A stretch of DNA of 64,000 nt, taken from Blastocladiella emersonii ATCC 22665. Taxonomy: Eukaryota > Fungi > Blastocladiomycota. How positions within the stretch are numbered: the stretch's first letter is position 1; each line of letters begins with the position of its first letter. The stretch spans positions 434,001 through 498,000 of the forward strand of contig JANHCV010000005.1 in assembly GCA_025594325.1 (NCBI GenBank), written 5' to 3'. Made by a program: the position numbers and the translations under genes. The notes below the pieces were generated by a model that was not told the DNA's origin, did no database searches, and saw only the letters and a program-made list of their open reading frames with translations. Positions 7,147-25,248 of the stretch are shown here, in pieces.

Positions 7147-9743
7147 ATGGCGCACACCTCGTCGCCGCGCCGCCGAGAAGGCGCTCCGCGGAGACCCGTC
7201 TCGTCGCCACCGTCGTCGTCGCGGTTCGCCGTGCTGCTCGCCGCGCTGCTCGTCCTCGTCGCGCTCGTCGGCTCGGTTGCCGCCGGTACGTCACTCCGCG
7301 GCCCACTCAACAGGTCGCCGACCGACTCACGGCCCTCGAACCCGTAGACTGCTGCACGGCGATCGGCGTCGTGTCGGACGCGGCCACGCCGCAGCAGTTC
7401 ACGGTGCAGGTGATGGGCAAGGGCTCCGGGTTCTACGCCCTCAACAAGCGGTACGAGGTGCAGATCGTGTTCCCGTCGACCTTCTCGATACAGCCGCCCA
7501 TCGCCATGTACACGCTGTCGCAGGCCAACTGCACGCGCGCCGTCAACTCGGCCAACAACAACAACAACAACAACAACGCCTTCATGTGCAGCTACGCCTC
7601 CGACAACCCCGCCCACCCGACCGACTTCGGCGTCGAGTTCAAGGTCATCGTCCCGCCCGCCGCCCCCGGCCAGCCGGCCGCCCAGCCCGCGCCCACCTCG
7701 GTCGTCGTCAACACCGAAAAGTGCCCCGTCGTCAACGCCCTCGCCTCGTGCCCCGCCGCCGCCGACCCCGTCGCGCCCAGCGACAGGGATTCTGGGAGTG
7801 GGTCCGGCCTCAAGATCGACTCGATGATCAACCTCAGCTTCCTCGGCACCGTGCCGCTCTGGCTCGTCGTCATCGTCGGCCTCCTCCTCGCCGGCATGCT
7901 CATCGGCTTCCTCGGCGTCTGCTACCGCAACTACCGCGGCAACCCCGAGCGCCGCAACGGCGGGTCCGGGTCGGGGCCCGGCTCGCGCGGCGGGCCCGGC
8001 GGCAGCGGCAGCCCCAACTCGAGGTTCACGCCCACGCTGCCCACCTTCGTCGAGAACGACCGCCGCAAGGAAATGGATCCCGCCGACCCGTCGTGGTGGC
8101 GCCGCCATGCCGGGAATGGGGGCGGGGACCCGTCGTCGCGCACGGGCACTGGCTCCCGCACGCTCGTCGGCAGTATCGGGAACGGGAACAGCAACGGCAA
8201 CGGCGGCGGCAGCGCGAGCGGGATGCTCCCGTCGGCCGCGTCCGGGTCGACCAAGCGGCTCATTGAGCAGAAGGCCAACGGCGAGTGGGTCATGAACCAC
8301 CAGGGCTCGCCCGCGCGCCCGCTCGCCGCCAACGAGCTCTTCGACACCCGGTCCGACTCGACGCTCGACCCCGTCGACCAGGTCACCATCCCCGCCCACC
8401 TCCTCGGCACCTCGGGCGGTAAGTCGCTCAAGTCGCCGCCGACCGTCGCCACCCGCGCGCCCATCTCGCTCGACGACCCGTCCACGGGCACCTACAACTC
8501 GCCCCGGTCCACGCCAAACGTCAGCTCGTCGATCCCGCCCTCGGGCGCATCGTCGTTTGGCGCCGGCGGGATCTACGACGGCGGAAACGCCATCGCCATG
8601 TCGAACCTCGGCGGCGGCGGCGGTAGTCGCGGCGGCGCTCATGCCGGCGGCGAGCCCGAGGTCCTCGAGATCCCCTCGACGCGCCACCGCGGCACCGCCG
8701 GCCGGTCGGCCGCTGCCGCCGCGCCCCTCGCGGGCTCGCCCGCGTCGACGCTCTCGCTCAACAAGGCGTACAAGAAGGGCGCCGCCGGCGCGTCCCTGCA
8801 GCGCACGCCGAGCAACGGGTCCGGCCACCCGTCCACGCACTCGTCGGGCGGCGCCGCGCTCGCGGCCGTGCACGGCGCCGGCATGACGATGCACGTCCCG
8901 CTCAAGCACCGGCCGAGCGTTGCCGGCGGCCATGGGGCTGGTAACGCGGCGCCGCTCATCCAGCTCGACGCGCAGGAGCTCGAGATCCCCGCCACGGTGC
9001 GCCGGTCGCGCTCGTACAAGCGCGAGAAGGGCGCCGGGCCTTCCGCCTCGGCCGCTGCGCCCGTCGCGCCCGCGGCCGCCCCCGCGGCTGTTGGCGGAAA
9101 CAACCGCCTCGCGCCCGCGCCGTCGCTCCGCCGCACACCCTCGGCATCGCGCCGCGCCCCCGAAACCTCGGCCGCCGCCGTCGCCGCCGCCATCTCGCGG
9201 CCCGGCGTCGTGATCGGGTCCGACCCGCTCAACCCCGCGTACGCCGGCGAGTACGAGGACCCCAACGACCTCGCCGCCATGGGCATCAAGCCCAACTCGC
9301 CCGAAAAGGACGACCGCATCCGCAACTGGGCCGGCGTCATTGCCACCATCAAGACCGACACCATGGAGCGGCCCGCGGGCGCCGCGGCGGCCGCAGCGGC
9401 AGCCGAGGCCGACGACGAGGAGGAGGAGGACGAGCCGATCGGCGTCACGCTCACGCGCGGCGGGTCCGGGCTCGCGCGGAAAACGACGCGGGCAGCGGCG
9501 GCGGCTGCCGCGGCCGCGGCGAGCGACTCGGACGACGAGGCTCCGCTCGCGTTCACGATGCCCCGCGGCGGCGCGCCCGCGGGAGGAGCGGGAGCAGCGC
9601 AGGGTACGTCGTCCCGCGCGCGACCCGCGATGCTGCGCAGCGACGACGAGAGCGAGGAGGAGGACGTGCCATTGGCGGCCGTCGTCAACTCGATGCAGCG
9701 CGAAAGGCAGGTCGACGACGTGATCAACTCGTACATGCGGTGA
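7147..9743 (+). CDS. Single-pass membrane protein (signal peptide, small Cys-containing ectodomain, TM, long low-complexity tail), function unknown
   Basis: Hydrophobic N-terminal segment (FAVLLAALLVLVALVGSVAA), GT-AG intron about 7286-7347, then the 790-aa ORF with TM LWLVVIVGLLLAGMLIGFLGVCY followed by basic residues. Host-like codon usage; (AAC)n run near 7554-7578. Confidence 0.7.
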
Positions 9744-10125
9744 TCGGGTCGGATCGGACGCGGGTTTTGTGTAATCTTTGTTGTGTTTGTTTGTCCCTCT
9801 TGCTCTCTCGTCTCCTCTTCTCATAGGTTGTGTGTCACTATCGTATCGTCTACATCGGTTGTTATGGCAGCTTGCTGAGTTCGTGGTCGGAGCCGAGTTG
9901 GGATGGTGGTCCCGCCCATGGCCATGGACACAGTTGCGACCGCGGCCACGCTACGGCGGGTCGATTCATCAAGACCAGCGTCTGCCGGGGACAGAACCGA
10001 GTGTTGGGGTTTCGTTCAGCTTATGGACTGCCTGCTCCGTGACAACACGAAGTTCAAAGTGCACGCGGGAGGTCTTTGCGCGCGAGCGGACCCTGGCAGT
10101 TCCACGCGACGAGTCGTGATGCAAG

Positions 10126-11167
10126 TGTCGTATCCCTTAAGGGATACGACATGGGCTGACCCACTGCCACTCGGGCTGACCAATTGCTTACCCCGAGCGG
10201 TTGGCAGCAGTCACTCGGGGTAACCACGTGAGACCCCGTTGCTTACCCCGGGTGGTTAATAATATGTCGGATTCAAATGTCGGATTCCCTTAGGGAACAC
10301 GACACGCGGGCGGAGGCCGAAGGCCGAAGAAGGGCGGCGGCGGGCGGGGTCACGTGGGTCACGTGCAGATGAACGGCGCGTGGACACGGCTGCGAGTCGA
10401 TCTGCGAGTCGATCTGCGAGACAAGTCCGAGAGCAGATCCCTGAGCCCGTCCCTGACCAACCGCTCGGGCTGACCATTGCTTACCCCGAGCGGTCGGCGG
10501 CGGCCGGCGAGCGCAGCGAGACGAAGAGCAGCGCAGCTGCGGCTACCCACTGACAGAGTTCCCTGGTCTGGTCCCTGAGCACAGCTGCAAGTCGATCTGT
10601 TTGGTCGCGGCAATAGGCCCTTGAAGGCTCTTGGAATAATTCCACGAGAGGTCGGCGGTCAGTCCAAGAACGCAAGCAGCGACCCAGGTCGGCGACCACG
10701 GAGTCACTCCACGAGCCGGCCCACGACTTGGTCGGCGACTTGGTCGCGGCAATAGGCCCTTGAAGGCTCTCGGAATAATTCCACGAGAGGTCGGCGGTCA
10801 GTCCAAGAACGCAAGCAGCGACCCAGGTCGGCGACCAGCCCCTGACGGCTCTCGATGGCCGCCCCGAACTGGACCGGGTTGGAGCTCACTGGACCGGGTT
10901 CAAAGACAACCCGGTCCATGAAATTCGCTCGGGGTAAGCCATGGACCGGGTTGACCGGGTTGACCGGGTTGTTTTAAAGTAACAGTGTAGTGAAAAGGGG
11001 GGGAGGGACCGCTCCAGTGCCACTCTTCCCCCCCTTTCAAATCCCTAAAGGTCAATCGACCCCCTCAACCCGGTCCACCCGGTCCATGGCTTACCCCGAG
11101 CGAATTTCAATTGACTTGGTCCATTGAACCCGGTCCATGGCTTACGGCGAACGATTCAAAGGGCGGG
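10126..11167 (+). repeat. Left terminal inverted repeat
   Basis: Colinear reverse complement of 24928-25969 (paired coordinates sum to 36095 throughout, e.g. identical spurious ORFs 10704-10919 and 25176-25391); about six mismatches seen by eye. Confidence 0.95.
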
Positions 11168-11257
11168 AAACCTGGTCCAGGCTGCCGTGACCCGGTCGCT
11201 GCAAGTACAGTAAACAAAAGGTACAAAGTTGTATTCACAAAGGAGTCTCTGGACTCG

Positions 11258-13600
11258 TTACATCTCGTCTTCGGACAGCTCAACTGTGTACGGTCTGCAG
11301 TACTTGTAGATGCGAAGCTTGCGGCGATTCACGGTGCGACGCGTCACCTCGAAGAGCTCCTGCTTGTTGGCCGGGTTGACTTCGCGCTTGATGTACTCGC
11401 CGAACTTGGTCTGCGACATGGACGAGCGGCCAGGGAAGCGCTTCTCGGCGTACTTGCGGTAAAACTCGTAGAACGCGTCTGCCTCGAGCTCCTGCACGAC
11501 TTCGACCTGGCGCGTGTGGTCCAGGAGGTTGAGCGGGAAGCCGCCGTACTCCATGATGTCCATGGCCAGCGCGGGAACCGGCTCCAGTGCCGCCATGATG
11601 GCGTCGTTGCGGGCCTGGTTGCGCGGGAACTTGGACAGCGTCAGGTGCGAGAGGTCGAGGCGGAGGATGTAGGTAAAGATCTCGTCGGCGTGCTCCTTGA
11701 CAAACGCGTCGAGCTTGCCAAAGTAGTTCTCGTCCTGGCACTTGATGTTGGACATCTTGAGGACGAACTCGCGGCGACCAGTCTTGGTGAGTGGCAGCAC
11801 GTCGCAGTTGTTGGTTGCGATCATAAAGTTGTTGACGTTCTTGACCTCCTTGCGTTTCATGTACTTTTCGTTGACGATGAGCTTGTCCTCGGTGACCATG
11901 CTCTTGAGCTTGTCAAACGCGTTCTTGAGCTCGGCTGGCTTGCTGGAGGGCATCTTGTCAAACAGCACGAGCATCTTGTGGGCGATCTCCGAGTTGAACT
12001 CGCCCTGGAGCCACGTCGGCCCGTTGCTGATGGACACCGTGTTCTTGCGGCCGATAATGTACTGGGCCAGAAGGTGGTAGAACTTGCCCTTGCCCACGCC
12101 CTCGAGACCCGTCAGCAGCAGCATCACGCCATTGGCCTTGCCCGTGGTGAGCAGGCACTGGACCCACTTGAGGACATACGCGTACTCTTCCTCGTTGCCG
12201 CTGCAGACCACGTCGCGAATGTACTCGAGGTACATGGCAATTGACTCGGGCTCAATGTCGCGGCCAAGGTCCATGGCCGCAAACCCGTAGAACGCATTAA
12301 AGTAGTCGACCACGAGGCCGTTCTGGTGCGACGGCCCCCACTGCGGCTTGTGCATGTCAAAGATGAGCGCCTTGACCTGTGGAGCGTACTTGATGGCCCC
12401 CGTGCTGCACGCCTTCTTCACGTTGTCCTCGCCATTGGTGTCCCACGCGTCGGTCACGGTGCGGCGAAAGTACATCTCGCCGACCAGGTCCTTGCGGACA
12501 AACTCGCCCACGTACTTGATCACGGCCTCCTTCCACGACTGCTTGTCCTCGTCCACCTCGCGGCTGAGGTAGTGGGAGATGACCTTGCCGATCCAGTCGT
12601 CGTCGTAGTGCAGGTCACGCTCGAGCTGCACGGCAACAAACGCGGCCGGGTCCTCGCAAAAGTCGGGGAGCTTGCCCTTGTCCTTGGACTCAGGCACCGT
12701 GATCTCCTTCTTGTCCCACTCCACCTCGAAGCCCGTGTACTTGAGCGTGTTGGCGGACATCTTGGCGAGCAGCTCGGCGTTGATGCGGTCGTCCTTCTTG
12801 ACCATGAACCCGTCAAACACAAGCACGCTTGGCACAAGGTCGTTGGCGTGGGCAAAGTCAATGGCGCGCATCAGGAGGATTGACTCGACGGCCTGGAACA
12901 GGTTGGAGAGCACCGAGCCCTTGTTCATGGTCTTGTCTGCGCGAGGCTTGGACGCCTTGACGACGTGCGGAAAGTCCTTCTCAATCAGCTTGTACAGCAA
13001 GCCGTACAGCATGTGGTGGAAGGCCGCGAGCTCGGGGTGCACCGCGTCGCGGTCGACGAACTCGTTGAATAGCATCGAGAGGAACTCCTGCTTATCCCCG
13101 AGCCCCCACTTGGCCAGCGCGGCTGTGCGGTTGGCGAGGTACTGGTCAAAGACGCCGTGGCCAAGGTTGTAGTGCTGGCAGACGCCGCAGAGGATCGACG
13201 GCGCCGCGCCCTTCATGTCAAGGTCCTGGAGCACGCCCTTGGCCAGCGGGCTGCGGATGAGGTCCTTGCTGAAGCTCTGGAGCGACGGCGACGTGGCGTA
13301 GAGTTGGCCAAACTTCTTCTTGACCGAGGTCGACTGCGTGGTGAACGAGTACACAGTCTCCTTGCCATCGCCGTAGCTCGCCTTGGCCAGCGCCGCGTAG
13401 GCCTTGAGCTTCTTCTTGACCTCGGCGTCGATGCCCGAGTACCACGCGCAGAGCCCGTCGAGCACGTCCTTGTTGTAGTACTCGCGCAGCACAACCTGGC
13501 GCGAGTCCGTGAACATGGACTTGGTGTAGTCGAGGGTCTTGGCGATCTTGGTCAGCTGGGGCATGGCCGAGTAGTTACTGTTAAGCACAGAATAAAGCAT
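11258..13600 (-). CDS. TVpol-like (PolA-derived) primase fused to SF3/D5-like helicase
   Basis: N-terminal DLDMKGAAPSIL and VLVFDGFMV resemble TVpol motifs. C-terminal Walker A GLEGVGKG, Walker B region LVLFDK, motif C FMIATNN and GRREF. The real start may be the downstream ATG (MPQL) at 13564. Confidence 0.8.
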   Translation of the reverse strand: MLYSVLNSNYSAMPQLTKIAKTLDYTKSMFTDSRQVVLREYYNKDVLDGLCAWYSGIDAEVKKKLKAYAALAKASYGDGKETVYSFTTQSTSVKKKFGQLYATSPSLQSFSKDLIRSPLAKGVLQDLDMKGAAPSILCGVCQHYNLGHGVFDQYLANRTAALAKWGLGDKQEFLSMLFNEFVDRDAVHPELAAFHHMLYGLLYKLIEKDFPHVVKASKPRADKTMNKGSVLSNLFQAVESILLMRAIDFAHANDLVPSVLVFDGFMVKKDDRINAELLAKMSANTLKYTGFEVEWDKKEITVPESKDKGKLPDFCEDPAAFVAVQLERDLHYDDDWIGKVISHYLSREVDEDKQSWKEAVIKYVGEFVRKDLVGEMYFRRTVTDAWDTNGEDNVKKACSTGAIKYAPQVKALIFDMHKPQWGPSHQNGLVVDYFNAFYGFAAMDLGRDIEPESIAMYLEYIRDVVCSGNEEEYAYVLKWVQCLLTTGKANGVMLLLTGLEGVGKGKFYHLLAQYIIGRKNTVSISNGPTWLQGEFNSEIAHKMLVLFDKMPSSKPAELKNAFDKLKSMVTEDKLIVNEKYMKRKEVKNVNNFMIATNNCDVLPLTKTGRREFVLKMSNIKCQDENYFGKLDAFVKEHADEIFTYILRLDLSHLTLSKFPRNQARNDAIMAALEPVPALAMDIMEYGGFPLNLLDHTRQVEVVQELEADAFYEFYRKYAEKRFPGRSSMSQTKFGEYIKREVNPANKQELFEVTRRTVNRRKLRIYKYCRPYTVELSEDEM

Positions 13601-13728
13601 TTTACTTTGATGCGGAAAAACGCAGTCTGGGAGCAGGGGCGGGGCCGTGCTTTTGAAGCGCTGCGATTATCGCTATTGCTGCTGGCTGTGTCTGGGTACG
13701 TGTGCAGTTAGTCACTGCAAAAAGGTAT

Positions 13729-14202
13729 GGGGGTCAGGCGGGGGTCAGGCGGGGGTCAGGCGGGGGTCAGGCGGGGGTCAGGTGGGCGGTCAGGCGGGGG
13801 TCAGGCGGGGGTCAGGTGGGCGGTCAGGCGGGGGTCAGGTGGGCGGTCAGGCGGGGGTCAGGTGGGCGGTCAGGCGGGGGTCAGGCGGGGGTCAGGTCAA
13901 GGGTGCCAGGTCGGGGGGTCAGGTCAAGGGTGCCAGGTCGGGGGGTCAGGTCAAGGGCGCCAGGTCGGAGGTCAGGGTCGGAGGTCAGGGTCGGAGGTCA
14001 GGGTCGAAGGTCAGGGTCGAAGGTCAGGGTCGGAGGTCAGGGTCGGAGGTCAGGGTTGGAGGTCAGGGTCGGAGGTCAGGGTCAGAGGTCAGGGTCGGAG
14101 GTCAGGGTCGGAGGTCAGGGTCGGAGGGGGGGGGGTGCCTTGTTTGGCATGGCCCATGACTTGCCACCACCCTGACCCTGACCCTGACCCTGACCCTGAC
14201 CC
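13729..14202. repeat. G-rich nested tandem array (GGTCAG-based units of about 11, 23, 27 and 13 bp) followed by inverted (CCCTGA)5
   Basis: Units GGGGGTCAGGC, TCAGGTGGGCGGTCAGGCGGGGG, GGTCAGGTCAAGGGTGCCAGGTCGGGG and GGAGGTCAGGGTC read directly; (CCCTGA)5 at 14170-14199. Confidence 0.95.
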
Positions 14203-14284
14203 AGGCCCAGCTACCCAGAAAAAAGAACGTTGCGTTCAAACGCACTTGAGCCCATGGAGCCTTTTTGTTGACAGTCAGTAAACC

Positions 14285-15412
14285 ATGTCGCTCGAGTCTC
14301 TTGCCTCCCAGGTCGCTGTTGCCCTCGCTCAGCATGTTGCCGCAGACGTGGTGCAGCAAGTCATGGACAAGCTCCAGCCCGTATTTGGGTCTATTGACAA
14401 GCGCTTCAAGGACTTTGACGCGCGACTCAAGGCCATCGAGTCACATGACCCAGATCACGGCGCTGATCAGCAAGTCACTCCTGTGGAAGTCGACACCCCC
14501 AAGGTCAAGTTTGCCAAGCTGACCAAGGATGCCATCAAGGCATGTGTCAACGCGCCTGTGGTGGACAAGAACGGGGAGCAGGCCACGCTGAGCGACACGG
14601 ACAAGACCAAGACAACTCGCGTGCTCCTTGCATTTGCCAAGTTGGGCATGGATATCCACAACGTCGATGCCGTGTCCAAGGCCGTGGCCACGTACCGCGC
14701 GATCAAGGGGTCCAAGAACGTCCAGGGTCTGCAGGTCGAGACGCTCAAGGCCCTGGCCAAGTACTGCACCTGGAACGGGTGGACCGAACTCGGGGCCAAG
14801 TACACAGAGGCCAAGAAGCAGGACGCTGCTGACTTCCGCGACGCGCGCAAGGAACTTGAGTCTGGTGCGCTCCCAAGCCGTGACGCCATTTGCGCCGCTA
14901 TTGTTGATGCAAAGGGCTCGGGCACGGGGCTCCTGCGTCTGTACCTCCAAGTTGTGAGTGCGGTGCGCTCCGACCCTGCGTTCCTGACCACGAAGCCAAC
15001 CACTGGGTACCCGTACTACGACCCAGAGACCCAGATTCTGGCCGGCGATGTCATTGTCAAGACAGAGGGCTGTGGCTACAACTTCTCGCACACAGTTAGT
15101 GAGCCCAAGGTCGCCGCCGCTCTCAAGCGTATCCTTGCCCAGCGTCTCGCCGAAGGTCATGACTTTGTCTTCAACAACTACACCCTCGAGGAGCTCAAGG
15201 ACACCACGCTCTGCAAGAGGGTTAGCAGCACCTGGTGTACGTCGATTAGTTGGGCTGCAAAGACGGTCGGCTTTGAGGATGGCGGCGTGGCAGTGATCCG
15301 CCGTATCTCCACCAGTGAGAACTTTGCTGCGCAGCAAGCTATTGCCAAACGCGCGCACGAGATGGGTCACAGCGTCCCCATTGCGCTGACCTACTACATG
15401 ACGCCTCAGTAA
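14285..15412 (+). CDS. Tyrosine recombinase (PLV type)
   Basis: Catalytic-like residues in the expected order: R (SAVRSD), K (VKT), R (VIRRI), H and Y (MGHSVPIALTYY, Tyr at His+9). Confidence 0.75.
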   Translation: MSLESLASQVAVALAQHVAADVVQQVMDKLQPVFGSIDKRFKDFDARLKAIESHDPDHGADQQVTPVEVDTPKVKFAKLTKDAIKACVNAPVVDKNGEQATLSDTDKTKTTRVLLAFAKLGMDIHNVDAVSKAVATYRAIKGSKNVQGLQVETLKALAKYCTWNGWTELGAKYTEAKKQDAADFRDARKELESGALPSRDAICAAIVDAKGSGTGLLRLYLQVVSAVRSDPAFLTTKPTTGYPYYDPETQILAGDVIVKTEGCGYNFSHTVSEPKVAAALKRILAQRLAEGHDFVFNNYTLEELKDTTLCKRVSSTWCTSISWAAKTVGFEDGGVAVIRRISTSENFAAQQAIAKRAHEMGHSVPIALTYYMTPQ

Positions 15413-15440
15413 TCCTTTTGTCTCCGCCTTTGTTAATACA

Positions 15441-16553
15441 ATGTATGCCCACGAAGAGCCGCTCACAGACGCACAGCAAGCATTCCTGACAGACTTGTAC
15501 TACAAGCGCGGCCACGTAGGTGTTGGCATCCGTCAGCTCTTTGACATTGTGTCCAGAGAGAACACAGGGAAGCACATCTACCGCGCCCAGCTTGAGAGAT
15601 GGCTCGGCGAACAGTCTGTGTGGCAGCAGTACAAGCGCGCACCTCAGAAGCGCCGAGACATTCGAAGCATCAACTCAACAAGTCCTGGCCGCAACTTTCA
15701 GCTCGACCTCATTGACATGGGCGAAAATGGTACGTACAAGGGCTTCCGTTACATTCTTACGTGTGTCGACCTCGCGAGCAGGCGTGTGTTCCTCCAACCC
15801 ATCAAGACCAAGGACAAGACGCGGGAAGCATGGTCCAGCGTGGTCGCCAAGCACAGCCTTGCACCTGCCACGATCCAGACGGACAATGGGACCGAGTTCT
15901 TTGGCATAGAGGCCGGGACCGAGGCCAAGCACATCAAGGGCAAGGCAGGAGTGCCATACGGTCAAGGTGTTGTTGAACGCATGAACGGGACCATCCGCCG
16001 GATGCTCACACCGTGGCTGTCCATCCCGGGCAACAACGACTGGCCCAAGCACCTCGAGACCATTGAATCTGTGATCAACAGCAGCAAGTCGAGGGCCACA
16101 AGCAAGGCACCCAACGCGTTCCATGACATGCCCCGCGAAACGGCCAAGCAAGAGCTCAAGGAGATCCGAGCTGCCAAGGGCAAGCCCGAGGGCGACCCTC
16201 TGAGCGCGTTGTTGAAGGTAGGGACCCAGGTCCGAGTCTGCGAGCCGTACAAGACTGCCATGGAGGCCAAGGGGAAGCCGGTCTGGTCGACAACTGTGAG
16301 CCAGGTCCAGGTCGTGCGCAAGGGGTCGGGCGTAAGCAATCCGAGCTACAAGGTCCAAGGCCTCAAGGGCTTCTACCCTCGAAGCGATGTCCAGCCAGTC
16401 ACAGCGACCCAGGACCCGCCAACAAGGCAGCGCGTAGGTCCAGGTCTTCCAAGGCTCCCTGTTGCGCGCACCCCAGTCACGCCAAGGGAGCCCTCGACCC
16501 GGGTCAGGCGCGTCCCAGTCCGAGTCCAAGAAAAGTGGGACCGCGGGCTTTAG
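15441..16553 (+). CDS. DDE (rve) integrase of Maverick/Polinton type
   Basis: D (FQLDLIDM), D (IQTDNGTEF), E (VVERMNGTIRRML); N-terminal YYK..G...QL...WL..Q motif; C-terminal LKVGTQVRV...W...Y module. Confidence 0.92.
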   Translation: MYAHEEPLTDAQQAFLTDLYYKRGHVGVGIRQLFDIVSRENTGKHIYRAQLERWLGEQSVWQQYKRAPQKRRDIRSINSTSPGRNFQLDLIDMGENGTYKGFRYILTCVDLASRRVFLQPIKTKDKTREAWSSVVAKHSLAPATIQTDNGTEFFGIEAGTEAKHIKGKAGVPYGQGVVERMNGTIRRMLTPWLSIPGNNDWPKHLETIESVINSSKSRATSKAPNAFHDMPRETAKQELKEIRAAKGKPEGDPLSALLKVGTQVRVCEPYKTAMEAKGKPVWSTTVSQVQVVRKGSGVSNPSYKVQGLKGFYPRSDVQPVTATQDPPTRQRVGPGLPRLPVARTPVTPREPSTRVRRVPVRVQEKWDRGL

Positions 16554-18493
16554 AGCAGGGTCCAGTGGCTTTGAATGATGACCTGGCAGTCGTTGGCAAC
16601 TGCGACTGACGGGATCCAGATGAAAGAGTAGCTCTTGGCCGCGTCAAGGTACTCAATGCTCGAGAACTGAAGGAACTGGACATTGCCTTCAGCACGGCAC
16701 CCGGTGACAAGCGACACTGCAATCATGTCCGTCATATTGTACAGCGCAAAGTTCACAGTGTGGGCTCCAGGGAGCGCGCCGTTTGCGTAGTAGCCCTTTG
16801 CATGGACAAGGTAGTAGCCACTGACAGGGGGTTTGACGCATCCATTGATCACAGACGTGAACGCGCCCGCTGTGGACTGGAACGCAAAGGTGGCCGGGCC
16901 CGTTGATGCTGTGCCGCCAATGATCTTGCCGCCCGTGGTCACTCCGTTTGTAGAGCGGTGCTCGGCCTGAGCGACGTACCGGGTCGTGCCAGACCGCGAG
17001 TCAACGTACGCCTTGTTTGCCGCGTCGGTGCCTGCCACTGGAGCGAGGTCAAGGGTGAGCTGCCCTGTGAAGCGACCAGTGCCATTGACGCGGAACCTTT
17101 CTGTGCCAAGCGTCGCCGAGCCCACGACCACATTGCCGCCACCTGCCACAAGGGAGACCCCGCCCGTGGTTGCAGACGCAATCTCAATGTTACCCGCCGC
17201 TGTGCATGCCAGGTTGCTTCGCAGTACGCCTGCCTGCTTAAAGTCGACGTACGTCAATGTATTGGCAGCCGAGTCAAAGACAAGGTTCGCGCTTGTGGCA
17301 TTCCAGACCAGGACGTTGGGCACAGTCAGTTGCTTGCCAACTCCAAGACCACCAGCAATGGTGACTGCTCCAGTGCTTGATGTCAAACTGTCCGTCGTAT
17401 TTGCAAAGGCAAAGGCAGCGCCGAGTCCAAGGGTGGACTGGGGGAGCGTGCCAGTGACCGAGGCTGCGCTCACGGCCGTGACCTTGGCCGAGACGTCGGG
17501 GAGTCGTGCCAGGTCAATGGTCCCTGCAAGCTTGGCCGAGTCAATGCCAGATGCCAGCTTGGCGTTGGTCAGGGTCCCGTTGGCGATGCGGGCAGGGTCA
17601 AGGATCCCAGTGAGCTTGACCGCCGACACGTCCGCGACCTTGGCGTCTGTGACTGCGCCTGCTGCCAGGTGGGCTGTTCCAATGGACCCGACGTTGAGCT
17701 TGCCCCCATCAATGCCAGTTGCCAGCTTGGCGTTGGTCACGGCCGCGTCTGCCAGGACCAGGGAGCCGACCGTGCCCGCTGCCAGCTTGGACCCGTCGAT
17801 GCCAGCTGCCACCTTGGCGTTGGATACAGCACCGTCTGCCAGGGCTCCCGTCCCAATAGTCCCTGCAACGAGCTTGGACCCAGACACAGACGCGACCTTG
17901 GCATCTGTGACTGCCAGGTCAATGAGAGCCACTGTGCCGACTGTGCCTGCCACGAGCTTGGACCCAGACACGGACGCGACCTTGGCATCAGTCACTGAGC
18001 CGTCTGCCAGGACCGAGGTCCCAACTGTGCCTGCCACGAGCTTGGACCCAGACACGGACGCGACCTTGGCACCAGTCACTGAGCCGTCTGCCAGAACCGA
18101 GGTCCCAACGGCTGGGAGGTTGGACGCACTGAGTACGCCCACAACCTTGGACGCAGACACAGTGTCCAGCTGAGCATCAACGAGCTTGCCTGTGACCTGC
18201 CCTGCTGTAATTGTGGCGACCTTGTTGGCCGTGACGCTGGCTGGGAGCAGCTGTGCCGTGCCAACCGACTTGACATAGAGCCCTGCTGCGCCCACGCCAA
18301 GGGTCTGGTTGTTGACCTTGGCCGACACAGTGGTCCCTGAGACTGCCACGCCAGGGCCAGCAACAGGTGTGCCAACCGTGGCGTACACGGCACTGATGGC
18401 CGCGTCAACGTAGGCCTTGGACACGTCTGGGACCCCCGTGGTAGACACGGTCGGAGACGCAGTACTTGAGACGTTAAAGATATTCTTGACCAT
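16550..18493 (-). CDS. Fibre/spike-like virion protein with 28-aa repeats
   Basis: Repeats GTVGTSVLADGSVTDAKVASVSGSKLVA (84-bp DNA units at about 17870-18110) and PVAGTDAANKAYVD, a motif typical of viral tail fibres. Probable start MVKN at 18493, preceded by the element's TTAAAC motif. Confidence 0.7.
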   Translation of the reverse strand: MVKNIFNVSSTASPTVSTTGVPDVSKAYVDAAISAVYATVGTPVAGPGVAVSGTTVSAKVNNQTLGVGAAGLYVKSVGTAQLLPASVTANKVATITAGQVTGKLVDAQLDTVSASKVVGVLSASNLPAVGTSVLADGSVTGAKVASVSGSKLVAGTVGTSVLADGSVTDAKVASVSGSKLVAGTVGTVALIDLAVTDAKVASVSGSKLVAGTIGTGALADGAVSNAKVAAGIDGSKLAAGTVGSLVLADAAVTNAKLATGIDGGKLNVGSIGTAHLAAGAVTDAKVADVSAVKLTGILDPARIANGTLTNAKLASGIDSAKLAGTIDLARLPDVSAKVTAVSAASVTGTLPQSTLGLGAAFAFANTTDSLTSSTGAVTIAGGLGVGKQLTVPNVLVWNATSANLVFDSAANTLTYVDFKQAGVLRSNLACTAAGNIEIASATTGGVSLVAGGGNVVVGSATLGTERFRVNGTGRFTGQLTLDLAPVAGTDAANKAYVDSRSGTTRYVAQAEHRSTNGVTTGGKIIGGTASTGPATFAFQSTAGAFTSVINGCVKPPVSGYYLVHAKGYYANGALPGAHTVNFALYNMTDMIAVSLVTGCRAEGNVQFLQFSSIEYLDAAKSYSFIWIPSVAVANDCQVIIQSHWTLL

Positions 18494-18513
18494 GTTTAAC
18501 CTTAAGCAACAGA

Positions 18514-18765
18514 ATGATTTCCAGCGACCATGACCTGAGCCTGGACGAGTGGCGGGAGCACCTTGCCGGGACCATGCCCGTGCCAAGCAGCTGGTACAGC
18601 AAGAGCGACGAGGACAAGGCCAAGTGGCTACGGAAGCGCGACCGCAAGGCCAACCGGTACACGCACGTCGACAACGAGGCAGCGCGGGCAGAGCGGGTCA
18701 AGATCCGGATCTACAAGGCACTCAACGCCAAGCGCCGGGACCAGGGGGCAAATAGCACCGTCTGA
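18514..18765 (+). CDS. Small basic viral protein (83 aa), unknown
   Basis: Fills the gap between the fibre gene and the 571-aa gene; element-like codon usage; K/R-rich C-terminal half. Confidence 0.55.
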   Translation: MISSDHDLSLDEWREHLAGTMPVPSSWYSKSDEDKAKWLRKRDRKANRYTHVDNEAARAERVKIRIYKALNAKRRDQGANSTV

Positions 18766-18842
18766 GGGACAAAAGGCACCTGCCACGGGGAAAAAGGTAC
18801 CGACAGGGGGACGTTTTATTTTCGGTCCATACAGTAACCATC

Positions 18843-20558
18843 ATGGGCCGAAGAACAGTACCAGAACTACTCACAAGAGTGACCAAGGCAACTGACGGCC
18901 GCATCACGGCTGAGCGCCTTGCAGGGCAGAAGATCAAGGCAACCATTGATGGCCGCGAGTACACGTTCCCCAATGCCAAAGAGCTCCTCGACGTCTGGGT
19001 GCCTTACATCCTTGCCTTTGACTACAAGGTGACGCCCAAGAGCTATGCCAACGACTTTGGCCGCAAACGAGGCGACTCGCTGTTCTACCTCAAGCACCAG
19101 GACGGCGTCACTGGGTACGAGGTCAAGGACCTCCAGGAGCACGTCCAAGACACGCTTAAAGCGTGGGAAGAGCACCAGGCAACGGGCAAGGTCACTCGAG
19201 TCCCAGTCGCTCCACCAGCGGCAAGCCCCAGACCAGAGGCCCCCGAGTCGGCCACGGACAGCGACAGGGGCAGCAGCGAAGAGGAGCGCGACGAGCTGGC
19301 AGAAGAGATCTCGCGAGCCCTGGACGTCATTGACGAGGACGCTGTACCGGACCACTTGCTCCCCGTGCCCGTCCAGCCAGTCATGCCCGAGCAGTACCCG
19401 GTCGAGGCCGGCGACTATGTTGGTCAAGACATTGACGAGTACGGCGCCATGATCCCCGGCCAGTACCTGATCCAGAATGACAATGACGGCGGCAACGACC
19501 CGCCCCCAAGGCTTGACAACGGCACCCGCGACCTCGTGGTCATGCCACCAAGCTACGGCCCGGACGTGGCACAGCGGCAAGGCGTGTACAACGAGGGTCA
19601 CGTCCACCCGGCCATGGACGAGGCACGCATGATTGAGGGCTCCAAGGACTTGCAGGTCTACAACCCCGAGCGGGCGCTGACAACCACGGACGACATGGAG
19701 GTTGACGTTGTCCAGAACTTTCAACAGTTTAACCAGTTCGTGTACAACAGCTACACGCAGCAGAACACGCAGAACGTCGACATGCGGCAGTTCATCACCC
19801 AGTACGAGAACAACTACTACGAGCAGAACGTGGACATGCGGCAGCAGATCCTGGTCCGGTACAACAATGACCCAAACGTCATGGCCGCGCTCGAGCTCAT
19901 TGCCTCGCAGTTTGCCGGGTCCCAGGTCATGCAGTACCAGGCGTACCAGGCGCTCATCGAGCAGTCGGCGGCCGCTCAGGGACTGGCCATGGACGCATTT
20001 GCCAACCTCGCGTCCGGGATCGTGGACACGCTCCGAGCCAAACGCAACGACTTTGTCCGCCAGATTGACGCTGGCAACCGCGCGCTTGTGTCTGAGATTG
20101 CCACGGGCATGTCCTCTGCGCTCAGCAACCAGCAGGTGCTCATGAACCAGCTCGCAAGCGGCGTCCAGGGCGCGATCCAAGGGCAGACCCAGAGCAACGA
20201 GGCCATGACCAAGACGCTCCAAGACCTTGGGTCCAAGCTGGACACGATCCCTGCACCCCAAGTCATTGTCCAGCCTGCCGACACAAGCGGCCTCGAGGCC
20301 ATGATCAGGGAGCTGGCCGCGCAAAACAATTCTGGCGGTAGTTCTAAGAAGACCGACATGCTCCTCAAACAGATCCTCAAGCAACTGGGCTACAAGAAGC
20401 CGACCGACGCGAAGCTGTTCACAGACAAGCGGGCAGCGGGTAGCGGGCTGACAGCGCCCAAGATCCAGCGTCACCAGAAGATCCCTGAGCGGCCCGTCAA
20501 GCAGGTCTGTGAGACCCCAAGGCGCAGCGGCATTGTGCTTGACCTCGGCTGGGACTGA
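18843..20558 (+). CDS. Viral orphan protein (571 aa; acidic middle, Q/N-rich helical C-half)
   Basis: Long intronless ORF in the + strand cluster; preceded by T-rich tract and CAGTAACCATC-ATG; internal repeat QNVDMRQ twice. Confidence 0.8.
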   Translation: MGRRTVPELLTRVTKATDGRITAERLAGQKIKATIDGREYTFPNAKELLDVWVPYILAFDYKVTPKSYANDFGRKRGDSLFYLKHQDGVTGYEVKDLQEHVQDTLKAWEEHQATGKVTRVPVAPPAASPRPEAPESATDSDRGSSEEERDELAEEISRALDVIDEDAVPDHLLPVPVQPVMPEQYPVEAGDYVGQDIDEYGAMIPGQYLIQNDNDGGNDPPPRLDNGTRDLVVMPPSYGPDVAQRQGVYNEGHVHPAMDEARMIEGSKDLQVYNPERALTTTDDMEVDVVQNFQQFNQFVYNSYTQQNTQNVDMRQFITQYENNYYEQNVDMRQQILVRYNNDPNVMAALELIASQFAGSQVMQYQAYQALIEQSAAAQGLAMDAFANLASGIVDTLRAKRNDFVRQIDAGNRALVSEIATGMSSALSNQQVLMNQLASGVQGAIQGQTQSNEAMTKTLQDLGSKLDTIPAPQVIVQPADTSGLEAMIRELAAQNNSGGSSKKTDMLLKQILKQLGYKKPTDAKLFTDKRAAGSGLTAPKIQRHQKIPERPVKQVCETPRRSGIVLDLGWD

Positions 20559-20584
20559 CGCCCTTTTTTGTTGGCAGTCTTTAA

Positions 20585-21382
20585 ATGTACGACATTGTTG
20601 CCATTGACAACGGCTTTACGCGCAACAACGACGGCGAGCCGCTGCCGATCCCCAAGCACCCGTTCACCATGAACGTCATTGGCGCCAAGGGTCAGGGCAA
20701 GTCGACGCTGATCGCAAACATGGTCTGCTTCCCGCACTTTTACAAGGGCCAGTTCGACAACATCTGGGTCTTTAACCCGACGTTCCACGCCGACAACAAG
20801 TACGAGTACATTGCCAGTCAACCGATCCTGCGACCGCCCAAGAAGGAGCGCAACGTGCTGGACCCCCAGGAGCGCGACCCGGACCGGCTCAAGATCAAGC
20901 CAAGCTGCATCGTCACGGACCCCGAGCAGTTCATCCCGACCCTGCTCAAGATGCGCCAGGACCTGACCAAGACATTCGAAGAGTCTGGCAAGAAGGCGCT
21001 CCAGGACCAGCTGCTGATCATTGACGACGTGCTTGGGCTCAAGCTGCTGAGCCACAGAACGCTGACCAACTTTCTGTGCAACTCGCGGCACTTGAAGATC
21101 AGCTGCATCATTGGCGTCCAGCGGTGGTGTGCCCTGCCCAAGACTCTGCGCATCAATTGCAGCTACAGCGTCGTCTACCCAATCTATGACAAGACCGAGG
21201 TCCAGACGCTGCACAAGGAGATTGGGTCGCAGTTCGACCTCAAGGAGTTTGAGGCCATCATTGAACAGCTCTTTGACACGCGTACTGGCAACACGAAGCG
21301 ACGCTTCCTGGGCGTCAACAACCAGAACCCGCCCAAGTACCGGCTCGTAGACAGCTTCAGCGAGTGGATCGTGAAGCAGTAG
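20585..21382 (+). CDS. A32-like (FtsK/HerA superfamily) DNA packaging ATPase
   Basis: Walker A GAKGQGKS, Walker B LLIIDD, SRH motif and GVQ sensor in the A32 order. Confidence 0.93.
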   Translation: MYDIVAIDNGFTRNNDGEPLPIPKHPFTMNVIGAKGQGKSTLIANMVCFPHFYKGQFDNIWVFNPTFHADNKYEYIASQPILRPPKKERNVLDPQERDPDRLKIKPSCIVTDPEQFIPTLLKMRQDLTKTFEESGKKALQDQLLIIDDVLGLKLLSHRTLTNFLCNSRHLKISCIIGVQRWCALPKTLRINCSYSVVYPIYDKTEVQTLHKEIGSQFDLKEFEAIIEQLFDTRTGNTKRRFLGVNNQNPPKYRLVDSFSEWIVKQ

Positions 21383-21422
21383 ACTCTTGACTTTTTTTTG
21401 TTGCCGAGTCCTAAACTAAACC

Positions 21423-22643
21423 ATGTCCAGTACCAACGCCCAGTTCTCGCAGGTCCTGTCCAAGACTCTCCCTCCTGAGATGTCGTTCAACCTGCCCAAG
21501 GAGTCCGTCTATGCCGAGCGCCAGACCGTCCAGTTCACGGCTCAGGGCGGCCCCGAGTTTGCTCCTGGCAACAGCATCAGCGTCCTGCTCCCGCCGCGCG
21601 ACGACATGATGGACACGCACTGTACTTTCCTGCAGTTCTCGGCCAAGACCACGGACGCCAACGTCGCTTTCTGCGATGGTATCTTCAGCGTCATTGACTG
21701 TGTCCGCATCTACAGCGCGTCCGGTGCCCTACTCGAAGAGCTCCCGTACTACAACCTGCGTCAGCGCATCGAGGCCGACGTGACGGTCCCCCAGTACCTC
21801 AAGGACTCGTGTCTCGGCGTGGCACAGGGCTACTTTGCGTCTGGTGCGGACAAGTTCGCTGTCTCGTCCGGGCTGCACCGGTACATGCTGCCCATCAAGT
21901 CGGCCCTGCTGGCAAACCAGAAGCACCTCCCAATGAAGTACACGGGCGGCATCCGCGTTGAGTTCACCCTCGCACCTGGCAGTGACGCCTGCATTGTCAA
22001 GAACAATGCCATCCCGGGCTACACAGTCAAGGACGTCTGCATTGTCTCGGACCTGATCAAGCTCAACGACCAGCAGATCGCGGTCATGGACGCGGCCTTC
22101 AAGAAGCAGGGCCTCAAGCTCTTTGGCACGACCTACAACCACCACTTCCTGAACTACTCGGTGCCCAACTCGACGCTCAACATCTCGGACCGCTCGGCCT
22201 CACAGAAAGACATCCTGCTGTCGTTCCGCGACAATGCCGTGCTCAACGACAATGCCAAGGACTCGTTCCTTCGTGCCAAGACCATTACATCGTACCAGTT
22301 CAGCGTGGCCGGCCGACTCTTCCCTCAGCGACCCATCCGCTGTGACGACTACGCGTCTGAGGCGTTTGTTGAGCTGACCAATGCCTTCCATGGCCACGTC
22401 ATTGGCGCTGGCCTCACAGTTGACAAGTTCAACGCGCCGGCCGAGGGTACCTTTGTTGTCGGCCGTGACCTTGAGTCAAGTCGCACCGTGGTCAGCGGCG
22501 ACAAGTCTTGCAAGAGCCAGGCCGTGGACATGCAGGTGATCCTGACTTCAAGCGTGGCCCCGAACCAGCGCGTGGACGCCTTCATTGGCATCGACGTGGT
22601 CTACGAGTTCCTGCCAACCGGCGAGATCAACATCTACAAGTAA
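21423..22643 (+). CDS. Double-jelly-roll major capsid protein (PLV type)
   Basis: 406 aa; EFAPGNSISVLLP, SVIDCVRIYSASGALLEELPYYNL and YQFSVAGRLFPQRPI resemble PLV/Maverick MCP motifs; lies between the ATPase and penton genes. Confidence 0.85.
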   Translation: MSSTNAQFSQVLSKTLPPEMSFNLPKESVYAERQTVQFTAQGGPEFAPGNSISVLLPPRDDMMDTHCTFLQFSAKTTDANVAFCDGIFSVIDCVRIYSASGALLEELPYYNLRQRIEADVTVPQYLKDSCLGVAQGYFASGADKFAVSSGLHRYMLPIKSALLANQKHLPMKYTGGIRVEFTLAPGSDACIVKNNAIPGYTVKDVCIVSDLIKLNDQQIAVMDAAFKKQGLKLFGTTYNHHFLNYSVPNSTLNISDRSASQKDILLSFRDNAVLNDNAKDSFLRAKTITSYQFSVAGRLFPQRPIRCDDYASEAFVELTNAFHGHVIGAGLTVDKFNAPAEGTFVVGRDLESSRTVVSGDKSCKSQAVDMQVILTSSVAPNQRVDAFIGIDVVYEFLPTGEINIYK

Positions 22644-22685
22644 CGGCCCTGTCCTTTCTTTTCTTGCGTAGAGTTAAACCCCGCC

Positions 22686-22952
22686 ATGATCTTCCGTAAC
22701 CTCTGGACCAACTTTAGCAATGTGCTCGGCCAGGTCGGGTCCTTTGTCAACAAACACATGCCGACCGTCCTCAAAGGCGTCAAGACTGTGTCCAAGTTCT
22801 TTGAGCGGTCGCACAACCCCGCTGTGAGCTCCATTGCGCAGATGGTGACCAAGGGCGCCGACCTTGCCCAAGACATTCACACCTGGTACAACCGACCAAC
22901 AAGCGAGATCTTTGAGGCAGACGCTGACGACACGGGGACAGCTGTACAATAA
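22686..22952 (+). CDS. Small protein with N-terminal amphipathic helix (88 aa)
   Basis: IFRNLWTNFSNVLGQVGSFVNKHMPTVLKGVKTVSKFF; preceded by T-tract and TTAAAC motif; between MCP and penton. Confidence 0.7.
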   Translation: MIFRNLWTNFSNVLGQVGSFVNKHMPTVLKGVKTVSKFFERSHNPAVSSIAQMVTKGADLAQDIHTWYNRPTSEIFEADADDTGTAVQ

Positions 22953-22970
22953 ATTGTTGTCTTTGTTTAA

Positions 22971-23714
22971 ATGTCCGAGTACAAGACGCTGACCATCTGC
23001 AGCCGCGACCTCAAGAACGGCATCCTGTACCTACCACGACCCCTGTCCGTGCGCGGCGTCAAGGTCAACTCGGCGTACCTCTGCAACAGCTGGCACACGG
23101 TCAACTCCAAGGCCAACAAAGTGTACCTGACCCAGAGCCGTGGCGCGCTGACGTTCCCGGGCACCATCACCGTCCCTGATGGCAACTACACGGTCGAGAC
23201 GTTCACGGCCACGCTCAAGAGCCTGCTCAACAACGCGCCCTCAGCGTACCTCTGGCAGGGCACATGGGACGTCCAGGTTGACTCGACTACCCAGAAGATG
23301 CGCCTGGCCAACAACACGGTCGACTTTACAATTGGAACAGGGACGGCGTCGCTGAACGTCCACATGGGCTTTGTTGGAGCGTATGGCTACAGCAAGGTCC
23401 AGTACGCGTCGGCGCTGGTCAACATCTCGCCCATCAACCTGCTTCACGTCTACTCGCGCAACCTTGGCACCCGGCTCGCGGACAACATGTACAGCGCGTA
23501 CCCACAAGACAACGGCGTACTTTGTAGCATCCACGTCACGCAACCCTTTGGCAGCTGGTTCGAGCATCGACCACACATGGGCGACTACTTTCGCTTTGAC
23601 GCGCAGGGACAGGCCCAGCAGATTGACTGTATTGACATTGACGTGGTAGACGAGAACCTGCGCTCTGTCGACTTTCTTGGCCAACCCTTCTACGTCGAGC
23701 TCGCGTTCATCTGA
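22971..23714 (+). CDS. Minor capsid protein (penton, single jelly roll)
   Basis: NSWHTVN..N, ITVPDGNYTVETF...L..LL and IDIDVVDENLRSVDFLGQPFYVEL follow the penton pattern of PLVs and virophages. Confidence 0.85.
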   Translation: MSEYKTLTICSRDLKNGILYLPRPLSVRGVKVNSAYLCNSWHTVNSKANKVYLTQSRGALTFPGTITVPDGNYTVETFTATLKSLLNNAPSAYLWQGTWDVQVDSTTQKMRLANNTVDFTIGTGTASLNVHMGFVGAYGYSKVQYASALVNISPINLLHVYSRNLGTRLADNMYSAYPQDNGVLCSIHVTQPFGSWFEHRPHMGDYFRFDAQGQAQQIDCIDIDVVDENLRSVDFLGQPFYVELAFI

Positions 23715-23745
23715 CGTTGACTTTAATTGTTGTTGTACTGTAAAC

Positions 23746-23847
23746 ATGATCCTCGAGACGCTCCTTGTTGCCACCAACGCCCTGATCCTTGTAGCCAACC
23801 TGGCCATTGTTGGGTACACAAGCAAAGTATTCCACGCCGTAGAGTAA
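23746..23847 (+). CDS. 33-aa hydrophobic micro-ORF (below the ORF-track cutoff)
   Basis: MILETLLVATNALILVANLAIVGYTSKVFHAVE*; preceded by the same T-rich/TAAAC-ATG context as the other viral genes. Confidence 0.5.
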   Translation: MILETLLVATNALILVANLAIVGYTSKVFHAVE

Positions 23848-24343
23848 GCAACGACATGTGCTTTAAATTCTTTCTGCGAAGGCATAGTAAGACACAGGAC
23901 AATGAATACTGGCTCTACTGCATCAACGCCCCGCGCACCTTCCACGAGCATCCCTTGGACTGGCCGTCCGGGCCCCCAGTCAACAGCCAACTACACGGCC
24001 ATCCACGACGTGGCCCTGCCAGGTGCCAAGGTTGTGTACACTGTCTGCTTTGAATAGATCCTTCAAGTTAACTTGGTTAGCTACCTTGAAGCCTTTACTG
24101 GTCGCACTCAGACTACCCGGCGGTATGTGTACTTGTGCCCGCAGCACGGGTACACGACTTGGACCCACAGCAGCTCATTGTCATGGACCCAGCTGGGAGC
24201 ATCATAGTGATCGCATGGCGGCTTGGGCAGGGGGGCGATCTCTTTGATACAGCCTCGCATAGTTACAGTAGTCCAACAAAGTTTAAATTGACAAACGCAT
24301 TCAACGCACTTGGCATGACGTAGCAACGGGACACACTACGGCG

Positions 24344-25248
24344 TCGTGGACCCGACCAGGGCCCCTGCCCACTTTTTGAACAGCTCGCCGTAAGCCATGG
24401 ACCGGGTCACGGCAGCCTGGACCGGGTTTCCCGCCCTTTGAATCGTTCGCCGTAAGCCATGGACCGGGTTCAATGGACCAAGTCAATTGAAATTCGCTCG
24501 GGGTAAGCCATGGACCGGGTGGACCGGGTTGAGGGGGTCGATTGACCTTTAGGGATTTGAAAGGGGGGGAAGAGTGGCACTGGAGCGGTCCCTCCCCCCT
24601 TTTCACTACACTGTTACTTTAAAACAACCCGGTCAACCCGGTCAACCCGGTCCATGGCTTACCCCGAGCGAATTTCATGGACCGGGTTGTCTTTGAACCC
24701 GGTCCAGTGAGCTCCAACCCGGTCCAGTTCGGGGCGGCCATCGAGAGCCTTCAACGGCCAGTTTGCCGACCTTGGGTCGCCGACCAGTTGCAGCAGCGGC
24801 CGTGGAGCGAGCCGAGAACCATCGTGGACCCGACCAGGGCCCCTGCCCACTTTGAACCGTTCGCCGTAAGCCGTGGACCGGGTCGCCCGCCCTTTGAACC
24901 GTTCGCCGTAAGCCATGGACCGGGTCGCCCGCCCTTTGAACCGTTCGCCGTAAGCCATGGACCGGGTTCAATGGACCAAGTCAATTGAAATTCGCTCGGG
25001 GTAAGCCATGGACCGGGTGGACCGGGTTGAGGGGGTCGATTGACCTTTAGGGATTTGAAAGGGGGGGAAGAGTGGCACTGGAGCGGTCCCTCCCCCCCTT
25101 TTCACTACACTGTTACTTTAAAACAACCCGGTCAACCCGGTCAACCCGGTCCATGGCTTACCCCGAGCGAATTTCATGGACCGGGTTGTCTTTGAACCCG
25201 GTCCAGTGAGCTCCAACCCGGTCCAGTTCGGGGCGGCCATCGAGAGCC
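24344..25248 (+). repeat. Tandem duplication (period about 480-500 bp) of the inner TIR segment at the right end
   Basis: Units 24344-24749 and 24822-25248 both start TCGTGGACCCGACCAGGGCCCCTGCCCACTTT and end GGCCATCGAGAGCC. Confidence 0.9.

Follow-up and report, generated by a model that had tools for sequence, protein, structure and literature searches.

Palindromic tips flush with the target-site duplication in a polinton-like element family of Blastocladiella emersonii: a possible fold-back stage at the ends

The integrated element and its ends

The window analyzed here, a 64-kb stretch of the genome of the blastocladiomycete fungus Blastocladiella emersonii ATCC 22665 (assembly GCA_025594325.1, contig JANHCV010000005.1; locus L001), contains an integrated element of the type that we call a polinton-like virus (PLV), and both tips of this element are formed by a 26-bp palindrome. 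The palindromes lie outermost in a pair of terminal inverted repeats (TIRs), and the target-site duplication (TSD), GCAAG, is located directly outside them; therefore, the element extends from 10126 to 25969. The features of the ends, none of which is assigned to a strand, are as follows.

10126 to 25969: whole integrated element, 15,844 bp; its limits are the TIR tips and the 5-bp TSD
10121 to 10125: left copy of the TSD, GCAAG
25970 to 25974: right copy of the TSD, GCAAG
10126 to 10151: left terminal palindrome, TGTCGTATCCCTTAAGGGATACGACA, 26 bp, perfect, TG...TTAA...CA
25944 to 25969: right terminal palindrome, identical to the left one except for G at 25965, a mismatch private to the right arm
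10126 to 11197: left inverted-repeat arm, about 1.07 kb, with many short dyads and a 21-nt motif
24400 to 25969: right inverted-repeat arm, about 1.57 kb, longer by a tandem duplication of about 498 bp
10278 to 10304: subterminal imperfect 27-bp palindrome with the same half-site as the tip, 152 nt inside the left arm
25791 to 25817: mirror copy of the subterminal imperfect palindrome in the right arm

The original prediction, made from the sequence of this stretch, had described a perfect 26-bp palindrome at the left end, the same palindrome with a single mismatch at the right end, and a full palindrome, TG...CA and a TSD at both ends. The sequence read at these coordinates agrees in every respect: the outer bases are TG...CA, and both palindromes abut GCAAG without a gap. 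No third match to the 26-bp palindrome is present in the window at up to three mismatches (0 in 100 shuffles). Perfect palindromes with 13-nt arms are expected by chance at 0.01 per window in a first-order Markov simulation; a chance origin was rejected. As single-stranded DNA, the left palindrome is predicted to fold into an 11-bp stem with a 4-nt loop (−10.8 kcal/mol, z = −7.1).

The inverted repeats pair over 1054 nt each (10126-11179 and 24916-25969) and are 99% complementary. The arms are of unequal length because the right one holds the tandem duplication, in which 24418-24758 and 24916-25257 are 98% identical. The arms also contain larger imperfect palindromes, with 56-nt arms of 91% identity at 10919-11109 in the window and a span of 289 nt at 86% in another copy (L003:1005-1293), as well as 12 copies of the 21-nt motif (CGCTCGGGGTAAGC.ATGG-like). 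These internal palindromes and motif copies are candidate origin or binding elements.

Gene content and chromosomal setting

All nine long open reading frames (ORFs) of the window copy are open. The features between the arms are listed below.

11258 to 13600, minus strand: primase/D5-like superfamily-3 helicase, 780 aa (Pfam DUF5906, E = 1.8e-17; PHROG DNA primase, E = 3.7e-26)
13706 to 14153, no strand: G-rich tandem array, about 450 bp long, of 11-13-nt units resembling GGGGGTCAGGC, flanked by the primase-helicase gene and the 375-aa ORF
14285 to 15412, plus strand: 375-aa protein of no family, possibly a tyrosine-recombinase-like enzyme (lead only)
15441 to 16553, plus strand: retroviral-type (rve) integrase, 370 aa (Pfam rve, E = 1.7e-6; PDB matches to the integrase cores of human T-lymphotropic virus 2 [HTLV-2], prototype foamy virus [PFV] and human immunodeficiency virus 1 [HIV-1])
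16550 to 18586, minus strand: fibre-like protein, 678 aa, with 28-aa repeats encoded by 84-nt DNA repeats (Pfam Phage_Tail_Tip, E = 9e-9; PHROG tail-fibre families)
18843 to 20558, plus strand: 571-aa protein in the position of the capsid gene, a candidate by position, with no family or PDB match
20585 to 21382, plus strand: A32-type packaging ATPase, 265 aa (Pfam Pox_A32, E = 1.5e-12)
21423 to 22643, plus strand: 406-aa conserved protein, 29% identical to an Allomyces element product, with no family match
22971 to 23714, plus strand: 247-aa ORF (303 aa in the public gene model), with an Allomyces counterpart of 31% identity

The catalytic residues Asp89, Asp148, and Glu179 (D89, D148, E179) of the integrase are invariant across 14 relatives. 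The original prediction had held that the element lacks a protein-primed DNA polymerase of family B (pPolB), and indeed no PolB family was matched by the scanned ORFs of at least 184 aa, smaller ORFs being outside the scan. Likewise, no RuvC-like resolvase or HUH Rep was matched among the large ORFs, with small ORFs again outside the scan. The two capsid candidates (18843-20558 and 21423-22643) matched nothing in the family libraries or the PDB. The identification of the element as a plain Polinton was rejected, since no pPolB was detected in the large ORFs and the TSD is 5 bp, not 6 bp. The public gene models of the window copy omit the primase-helicase and integrase ORFs (L001:2685-5027 and L001:6868-7980), although both are open, and the integrase product has no record as a called gene.

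The GC content of the element is about 0.59, as compared to 0.65-0.72 in the left flank. The element starts about 380 bp downstream of where a host gene for a phospholipid-translocating P-type ATPase ends (public gene model; intervening sequence 9743-10125), and the insertion is therefore intergenic. Farther to the right, the host sequence contains a GC-rich 26-bp near-palindrome with a single central mismatch (28857-28882), which is unrelated to the element, and a tandem pair of 79-bp AT-rich units (29226-29383, 91% identical) that opens a stretch of lower GC content from about 28 to 38 kb.

The palindrome is conserved at the tips of all copies

Annotated copies of the 571-aa protein, with 75-97% identity, are distributed across the B. 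emersonii ATCC 22665 genome. We compared nine elements: the window copy and eight others (L002-L007, L031, and L032). Both halves of the palindrome are present at all 16 readable termini of the nine elements (14 of 14 in the eight copies outside the window), although a loss of the outer half in other copies was the outcome that would have spoken against the original prediction. In the five elements with an intact 5-bp TSD, the palindrome is flush with it, and the TSD is different each time: GCAAG in the window, CTTAC in L002, AGAGA in L005, GTAAG in L007, and GAAAT in L031. The palindrome is thus kept while the TSDs and flanks differ from site to site, and so the outer half is part of the mobile unit, whereas the target does not supply it; a host origin of this half was rejected on the same grounds.

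How does the palindrome vary among the copies? The alignment of the ends, which the original prediction had called for, confirmed the flush position and revealed three variants. Five elements carry TGTCG..TTAA..CGACA; L005, L031, and L032 carry TGCCG..TTAA..CGGCA; and L006 carries TGCCG..TATA..CGGCA. All three variants are perfectly palindromic at both ends, and therefore the differences between them are always paired changes. The subfamilies cannot be aligned just inside the palindrome, while the palindrome itself is identical at 22-24 of 26 positions.

Besides those in L003, four single-base departures from perfect symmetry occur: at the right end of the window copy, at the left end of L002, and in L007 both at the center of the left end and at the final base on the right. 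Each of them is limited to one arm of one element, except in L003, where the arms and flanks are mirror copies. Being private to one arm, these departures date from after the insertion, so that the tips were perfect in the replicating lineages. The comparison thereby shows that perfect dyad symmetry was kept in every replicating lineage sampled.

Two of the copies have unusual surroundings. In L003, the palindrome is flanked by the 5-mers CGCCG and CGGCG, and the host flanks L003:1-552 and L003:17563-18114 are reverse complements over at least 552 bp with one mismatch, the full extent of the locus on the left. The flanks and TIRs form an inverted duplication around the element; either the long TIRs underwent a genuine fold-back rearrangement, or the region is misassembled. 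L006 (L006:448-17043), which carries the TATA-centered variant, has no matching TSD and its arms agree over only the first 33 nt; it is therefore probably a recombinant of two elements.

The palindrome might in principle be an incidental footprint or artefact, with an outer half that was filled in when single-strand breaks snapped back by accident during integration and were repaired, or that was created by misassembly, and without function. Accidental annealing is listed as an alternative in a recent preprint on comparable elements (bioRxiv 10.64898/2026.07.28.741278). Against this explanation, the same 26 bp recur at 16 termini at different chromosomal sites, the palindrome is heritable within the variant classes, a terminal palindrome is also found in another genus, and the chance expectation is as low as stated above. 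We consider it highly improbable.

The half-site and a built-in control

The half-site of the terminal palindrome, TGYCG...CCCT, is a repeated motif of the element ends. In the form TGTCG-N3-5-CCCT, it has nine matches in the window, as compared to 1.8 expected. It recurs as an inverted pair in the subterminal palindrome of each arm, and an additional half-site begins at 10265. This distribution brings in the main rival explanation, namely that the dyad is purely a protein-binding structure: two inverted sites for a dimeric element protein (the integrase or an end-binding factor), maintained by selection, with a free form that is ordinary-ended or circular and never a hairpin. Such a protein would account for the excess of half-sites inside the arms, and co-evolution of the protein with its sites is expected to change the two half-sites in pairs, and to do so at each end.

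The subterminal palindrome serves as a control for this explanation. In the window copy and L007 it is asymmetric, and the asymmetry is common to both arms, so that it was inherited and tolerated. In L003 it is perfect, and in the other copies it differs or is absent. In the sampled copies, the half-site pair thus drifts when internal and never when terminal, a pattern that is hard to explain by protein binding alone. By contrast, templated symmetry, in which one arm is copied from the other, would give this very outcome. Moreover, the central change from TTAA to TATA is also symmetric, though the centers of dyads are not usually read base by base. To our knowledge, an inward-facing copy of a cleavable end beside the true end is not usual in DDE elements either. 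Altogether, we regard the pure binding dyad as possible, but clearly short of probable.

Relatives in Allomyces and in metagenomes

A HMMER scan with the integrase yielded 566 proteins at E ≤ 1e-10, among which the nearest named relatives are from Allomyces. The locus in Allomyces arbusculus (L089) is syntenic with the window element, including the 375-aa gene adjoining the integrase gene. The identities to the window products are 47% for the primase-helicase, 39% for the integrase, 32% for the ATPase, 29% for the 406-aa protein, 31% for the 247-aa product, and 27% for the C-terminal half of the 375-aa protein. The TIRs of L089 are 367 bp long. Its right tip, the better preserved of the two, is a 30-bp unit, TGTGGCGCCGACCTTGAGGTCGGCGCCACA, which also has the form TG...CA but shows no sequence relationship to the palindrome of B. 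emersonii. This tip is predicted to fold into a perfect 13-bp stem with a 4-nt loop (−17.9 kcal/mol), and its asymmetric bases are in the loop only. The left tip is the same but for three substitutions, and no clean TSD was seen at this locus. Structure is thus conserved in Allomyces while sequence is not, and the asymmetry is confined to the predicted loop, which argues against the binding-dyad explanation.

A more distant relative is a 20.5-kb metagenomic scaffold (L090; scaffold_1708 of sample SAMEA7614283) that encodes a Prim-Pol/D5 primase-helicase, an integrase of about 30% identity to that of the window, and a weak A32 match. At the contig start, L090:1-1152 is a 1152-nt fold-back with 100% identity, the center of which lies inside a 52-bp unit of the form TGTCG...CGACA, with the first CA 26 nt from the center. 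Sequencing through a hairpin end, or across a head-to-head junction left by replication, would produce a fold-back of this appearance. However, a blunt-ended molecule with the full 52-bp palindrome yields every k-mer of it if k ≤ 53, and therefore the fold-back proves the palindrome, not a hairpin. L090 is accordingly a third lineage with a terminal palindrome of the TGTCG...CGACA type, and it is compatible with a hairpin. The TGTCG shared with so distant a relative is also what an integrase recognition sequence would show, in favor of the binding dyad.

Other searches extended this set no further. Exact and degenerate searches for the B. emersonii palindrome in IMG/VR and the Joint Genome Institute (JGI) metagenomes found nothing, IMG/VR searches with the capsid candidate and the primase-helicase found no relatives, and the L090 virus was not found in IMG/VR. 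At 56 metagenomic loci with integrase relatives, the contigs are too short to contain ends. The IMG/VR relatives L008 and L009 possess a TIR, but the contigs end before the tip, and one of them is chimeric within the primase gene.

These comparisons show that the ends of this family, which encodes an rve integrase and a primase-helicase, have in the terminal palindrome a heritable feature that is conserved at the level of structure.

The 375-aa protein as a possible resolution enzyme

Next, we consider the 375-aa protein, the gene of which adjoins that of the integrase in B. emersonii and, in synteny, in Allomyces. If this protein were a divergent, protelomerase-like tyrosine recombinase, then the palindrome could be a telomere-resolution site: the enzyme would cut around the center and seal the hairpins, which would free a genome with hairpin ends from junctions or from the integrated copy, and the integrase would restore the palindrome on integration. 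Several observations point in this direction. Arg228, Lys259, Arg339, His362, and Tyr371 (R228, K259, R339, H362, Y371) are invariant among the homologues, including the Allomyces protein, down to 22% identity. The spacing R339-23-H362-9-Y371 equals that of two annotated Vibrio phage tyrosine recombinases, which were used as comparators. The predicted secondary structure consists of helices, a three-stranded sheet, and helices. Furthermore, XerA, the TelA protelomerase, IntI, Cre, Tn1549 Int, and topoisomerase IB recur among the weak Foldseek matches.

On the other side, these matches have probabilities of at most 0.23 and were obtained with a model of low confidence: two AlphaFold runs gave predicted local distance difference test (pLDDT) scores of 40 and 48, and the latter model was used. 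The protein has no significant match in Pfam, PHROGs, NCBIfam, or a PDB profile search, nor in a tblastn search of phages, and hhalign detected no relationship to either phage recombinase. The protein lacks the usual histidine of HxxR, and the Allomyces homologue has a 7-residue insertion within the 23-residue spacer. In addition, L090 is palindrome-tipped, and yet no homologue of the 375-aa protein was detected in it, including the gene adjoining its integrase gene. A tyrosine-recombinase-like enzyme is thus a lead, and we judge the telomere-resolution explanation as a whole to be improbable.

A model for the fold-back of the ends

On the basis of these comparisons, we propose that the 26-bp palindrome serves as the functional module at the termini of an integrating polinton-like family in blastocladiomycete fungi, and that its symmetry results from a fold-back stage. 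In our estimate, this proposal has about an even chance of being correct. It would operate in the following manner.

Linear form: In a linear extrachromosomal form, the 26-nt palindromic 3′ end would snap back on itself, and would be continuous with the complementary strand or prime its synthesis. The fold-back stage would keep the two halves symmetric, and would solve the problem of end replication for a primase-helicase element without a protein-primed polymerase. The hairpin may be only a transient primer.

End processing: A nick 3′ of CA at the base of the stem would regenerate the CA-3′OH end. As the stem of the hairpin is the normal end sequence, with the element body in place of the flank, this nick would be ordinary end-processing for a DDE enzyme. 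The nick could be made by the integrase, by the 375-aa protein, or by a helper enzyme. As giant viruses are known from zoosporic fungi, Allomyces among them, a helper-virus context is conceivable.

Integration: The rve integrase would attach the outer TG/CA of the element to the target, and the reactive end would be the bottom-strand ...CGACA-3′. Strand transfer and gap repair would then leave the full palindrome and the 5-bp TSD.

A more specific version of the model assigns the nick to the rve integrase itself. The integrase would double as the terminal-resolution enzyme, nicking a covalently closed 13-bp hairpin at its base, 3′ of CA, and reusing the resulting 3′-OH for integration. We regard this version as rather doubtful. 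If it were true, then the palindrome beside the TSD would be an unfolded telomere, and a single enzyme would tie together end replication, genome maturation, and integration in the primase-helicase PLVs.

Several points weigh against the fold-back stage. No extrachromosomal form was seen, and the material consists of integrated copies and one assembled contig with an ambiguous fold-back. That fold-back can be an artefact of a de Bruijn assembler (k ≤ 53) reading blunt ends; some assemblers hand contigs made at low k on to higher k. The paired changes are equally expected from a dimeric protein that reads both half-sites, and as the copies of one variant class are not independent, they amount to about two events. 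The occurrence of the half-site inside the arms fits a plain binding-site explanation. The loop of the Allomyces tip has the same top-strand orientation at both ends, and could reflect either flip/flop or independent CpG decay. Finally, we know of no rve integrase that opens hairpins.

Nevertheless, we lean toward a fold-back stage, in view of the paired substitutions, the deviations restricted to one arm, the asymmetric internal control, the loop-only asymmetry in Allomyces, and the turn of the L090 contig at the center of its unit. The interpretation in the original prediction, that hairpin telomeres gave rise to the palindromes, is partly supported by the mobile, flush TG...CA palindrome, the rve integrase, the lack of a detected pPolB, and the kept symmetry; the fold-back contig is compatible with it. 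As a reading of sequence, the hairpin is plausible.

Comparison with known systems

The original prediction had considered this arrangement to be undescribed in PLVs. This is no longer the case, as a preprint of July 2026 reports terminal palindromes beside TSDs in endogenous virophages (subtypes 1, 2, 5, and 6) and a PLV (subtype 4) of Halocafeteria seosinensis (bioRxiv 10.64898/2026.07.28.741278). The sole length given there is 52 nt, for the subtype 5 virophage, and the palindromes are tied to non-pPolB replication genes and to particular clades of rve integrases. In the model of that study, a hairpin formed by the palindrome primes replication after excision (bioRxiv 10.64898/2026.07.28.741278). 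The B. emersonii elements share with those of Halocafeteria the palindrome at the TIR extremity flush with the TSD (in five elements here), a primase-helicase in place of pPolB, and an rve integrase; the integrases are likened at the level of the rve family. They differ in the host, a blastocladiomycete fungus as opposed to a stramenopile, and in the length of the palindrome, which is 26 bp here, 30 bp in Allomyces, and 52 bp in L090. The preprint proposes no nicking by the integrase at CA, and contains no evidence from paired substitutions or private mutations. The arguments that we add are the deviations private to one arm and the built-in asymmetric control palindrome 152 nt inside each arm. 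Beyond this preprint, the literature yielded no other description of the arrangement, and no account of it in elements of Blastocladiella or Allomyces. To the extent that the literature could be searched, this is the first palindrome-tipped case in fungi.

Palindrome-tipped elements are hereby extended to zoosporic fungi, and the tip is conserved as a structure in two fungal genera, a metagenomic relative, and, according to the literature, stramenopile virophages. These findings bear on how PLVs and virophages without a protein-primed polymerase replicate their linear ends, and on how integrated copies return to virus genomes. The question of the ends thereby becomes answerable from read data.

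Among replicons with hairpin telomeres, those with protelomerases (phages N15 and PY54, Borrelia ResT, and Agrobacterium TelA) also possess a short perfect palindrome, the center of which corresponds to the would-be hairpin apex, and a replicated junction in which a single palindrome separates inverted body sequences, the arrangement seen in the L090 contig. Unlike the present elements, however, they do not integrate by a DDE integrase or leave a full palindrome flanked by a TSD, and a protelomerase is a weak lead here. The hairpins of poxviruses, asfarviruses, and chloroviruses and the rolling-hairpin ends of parvoviruses are similar in having long TIRs with repeats near the tip. The terminal fold-back for end replication and the nick at the hairpin base, as proposed here, would be shared with ends of the poxvirus and parvovirus type. 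In contrast, those ends are larger and imperfect (flip/flop), are served by a RuvC-like resolvase or a HUH Rep, and do not undergo rve integration, while the B. emersonii variants are perfect.

Polintons/Mavericks and mavirus-type virophages likewise have an rve integrase, TIRs, an A32-type ATPase, and a TSD of 5-6 bp. As opposed to Polintons, with their protein-primed PolB and 6-bp TSD, the elements described here combine a primase-helicase, a 5-bp TSD (in five elements), TG...CA tips, and a terminal palindrome. They carry the hallmarks of an rve-mobilised element: the DDE core D89/D148/E179, the TG...CA tips, and a short TSD with a fixed length of 5 bp.

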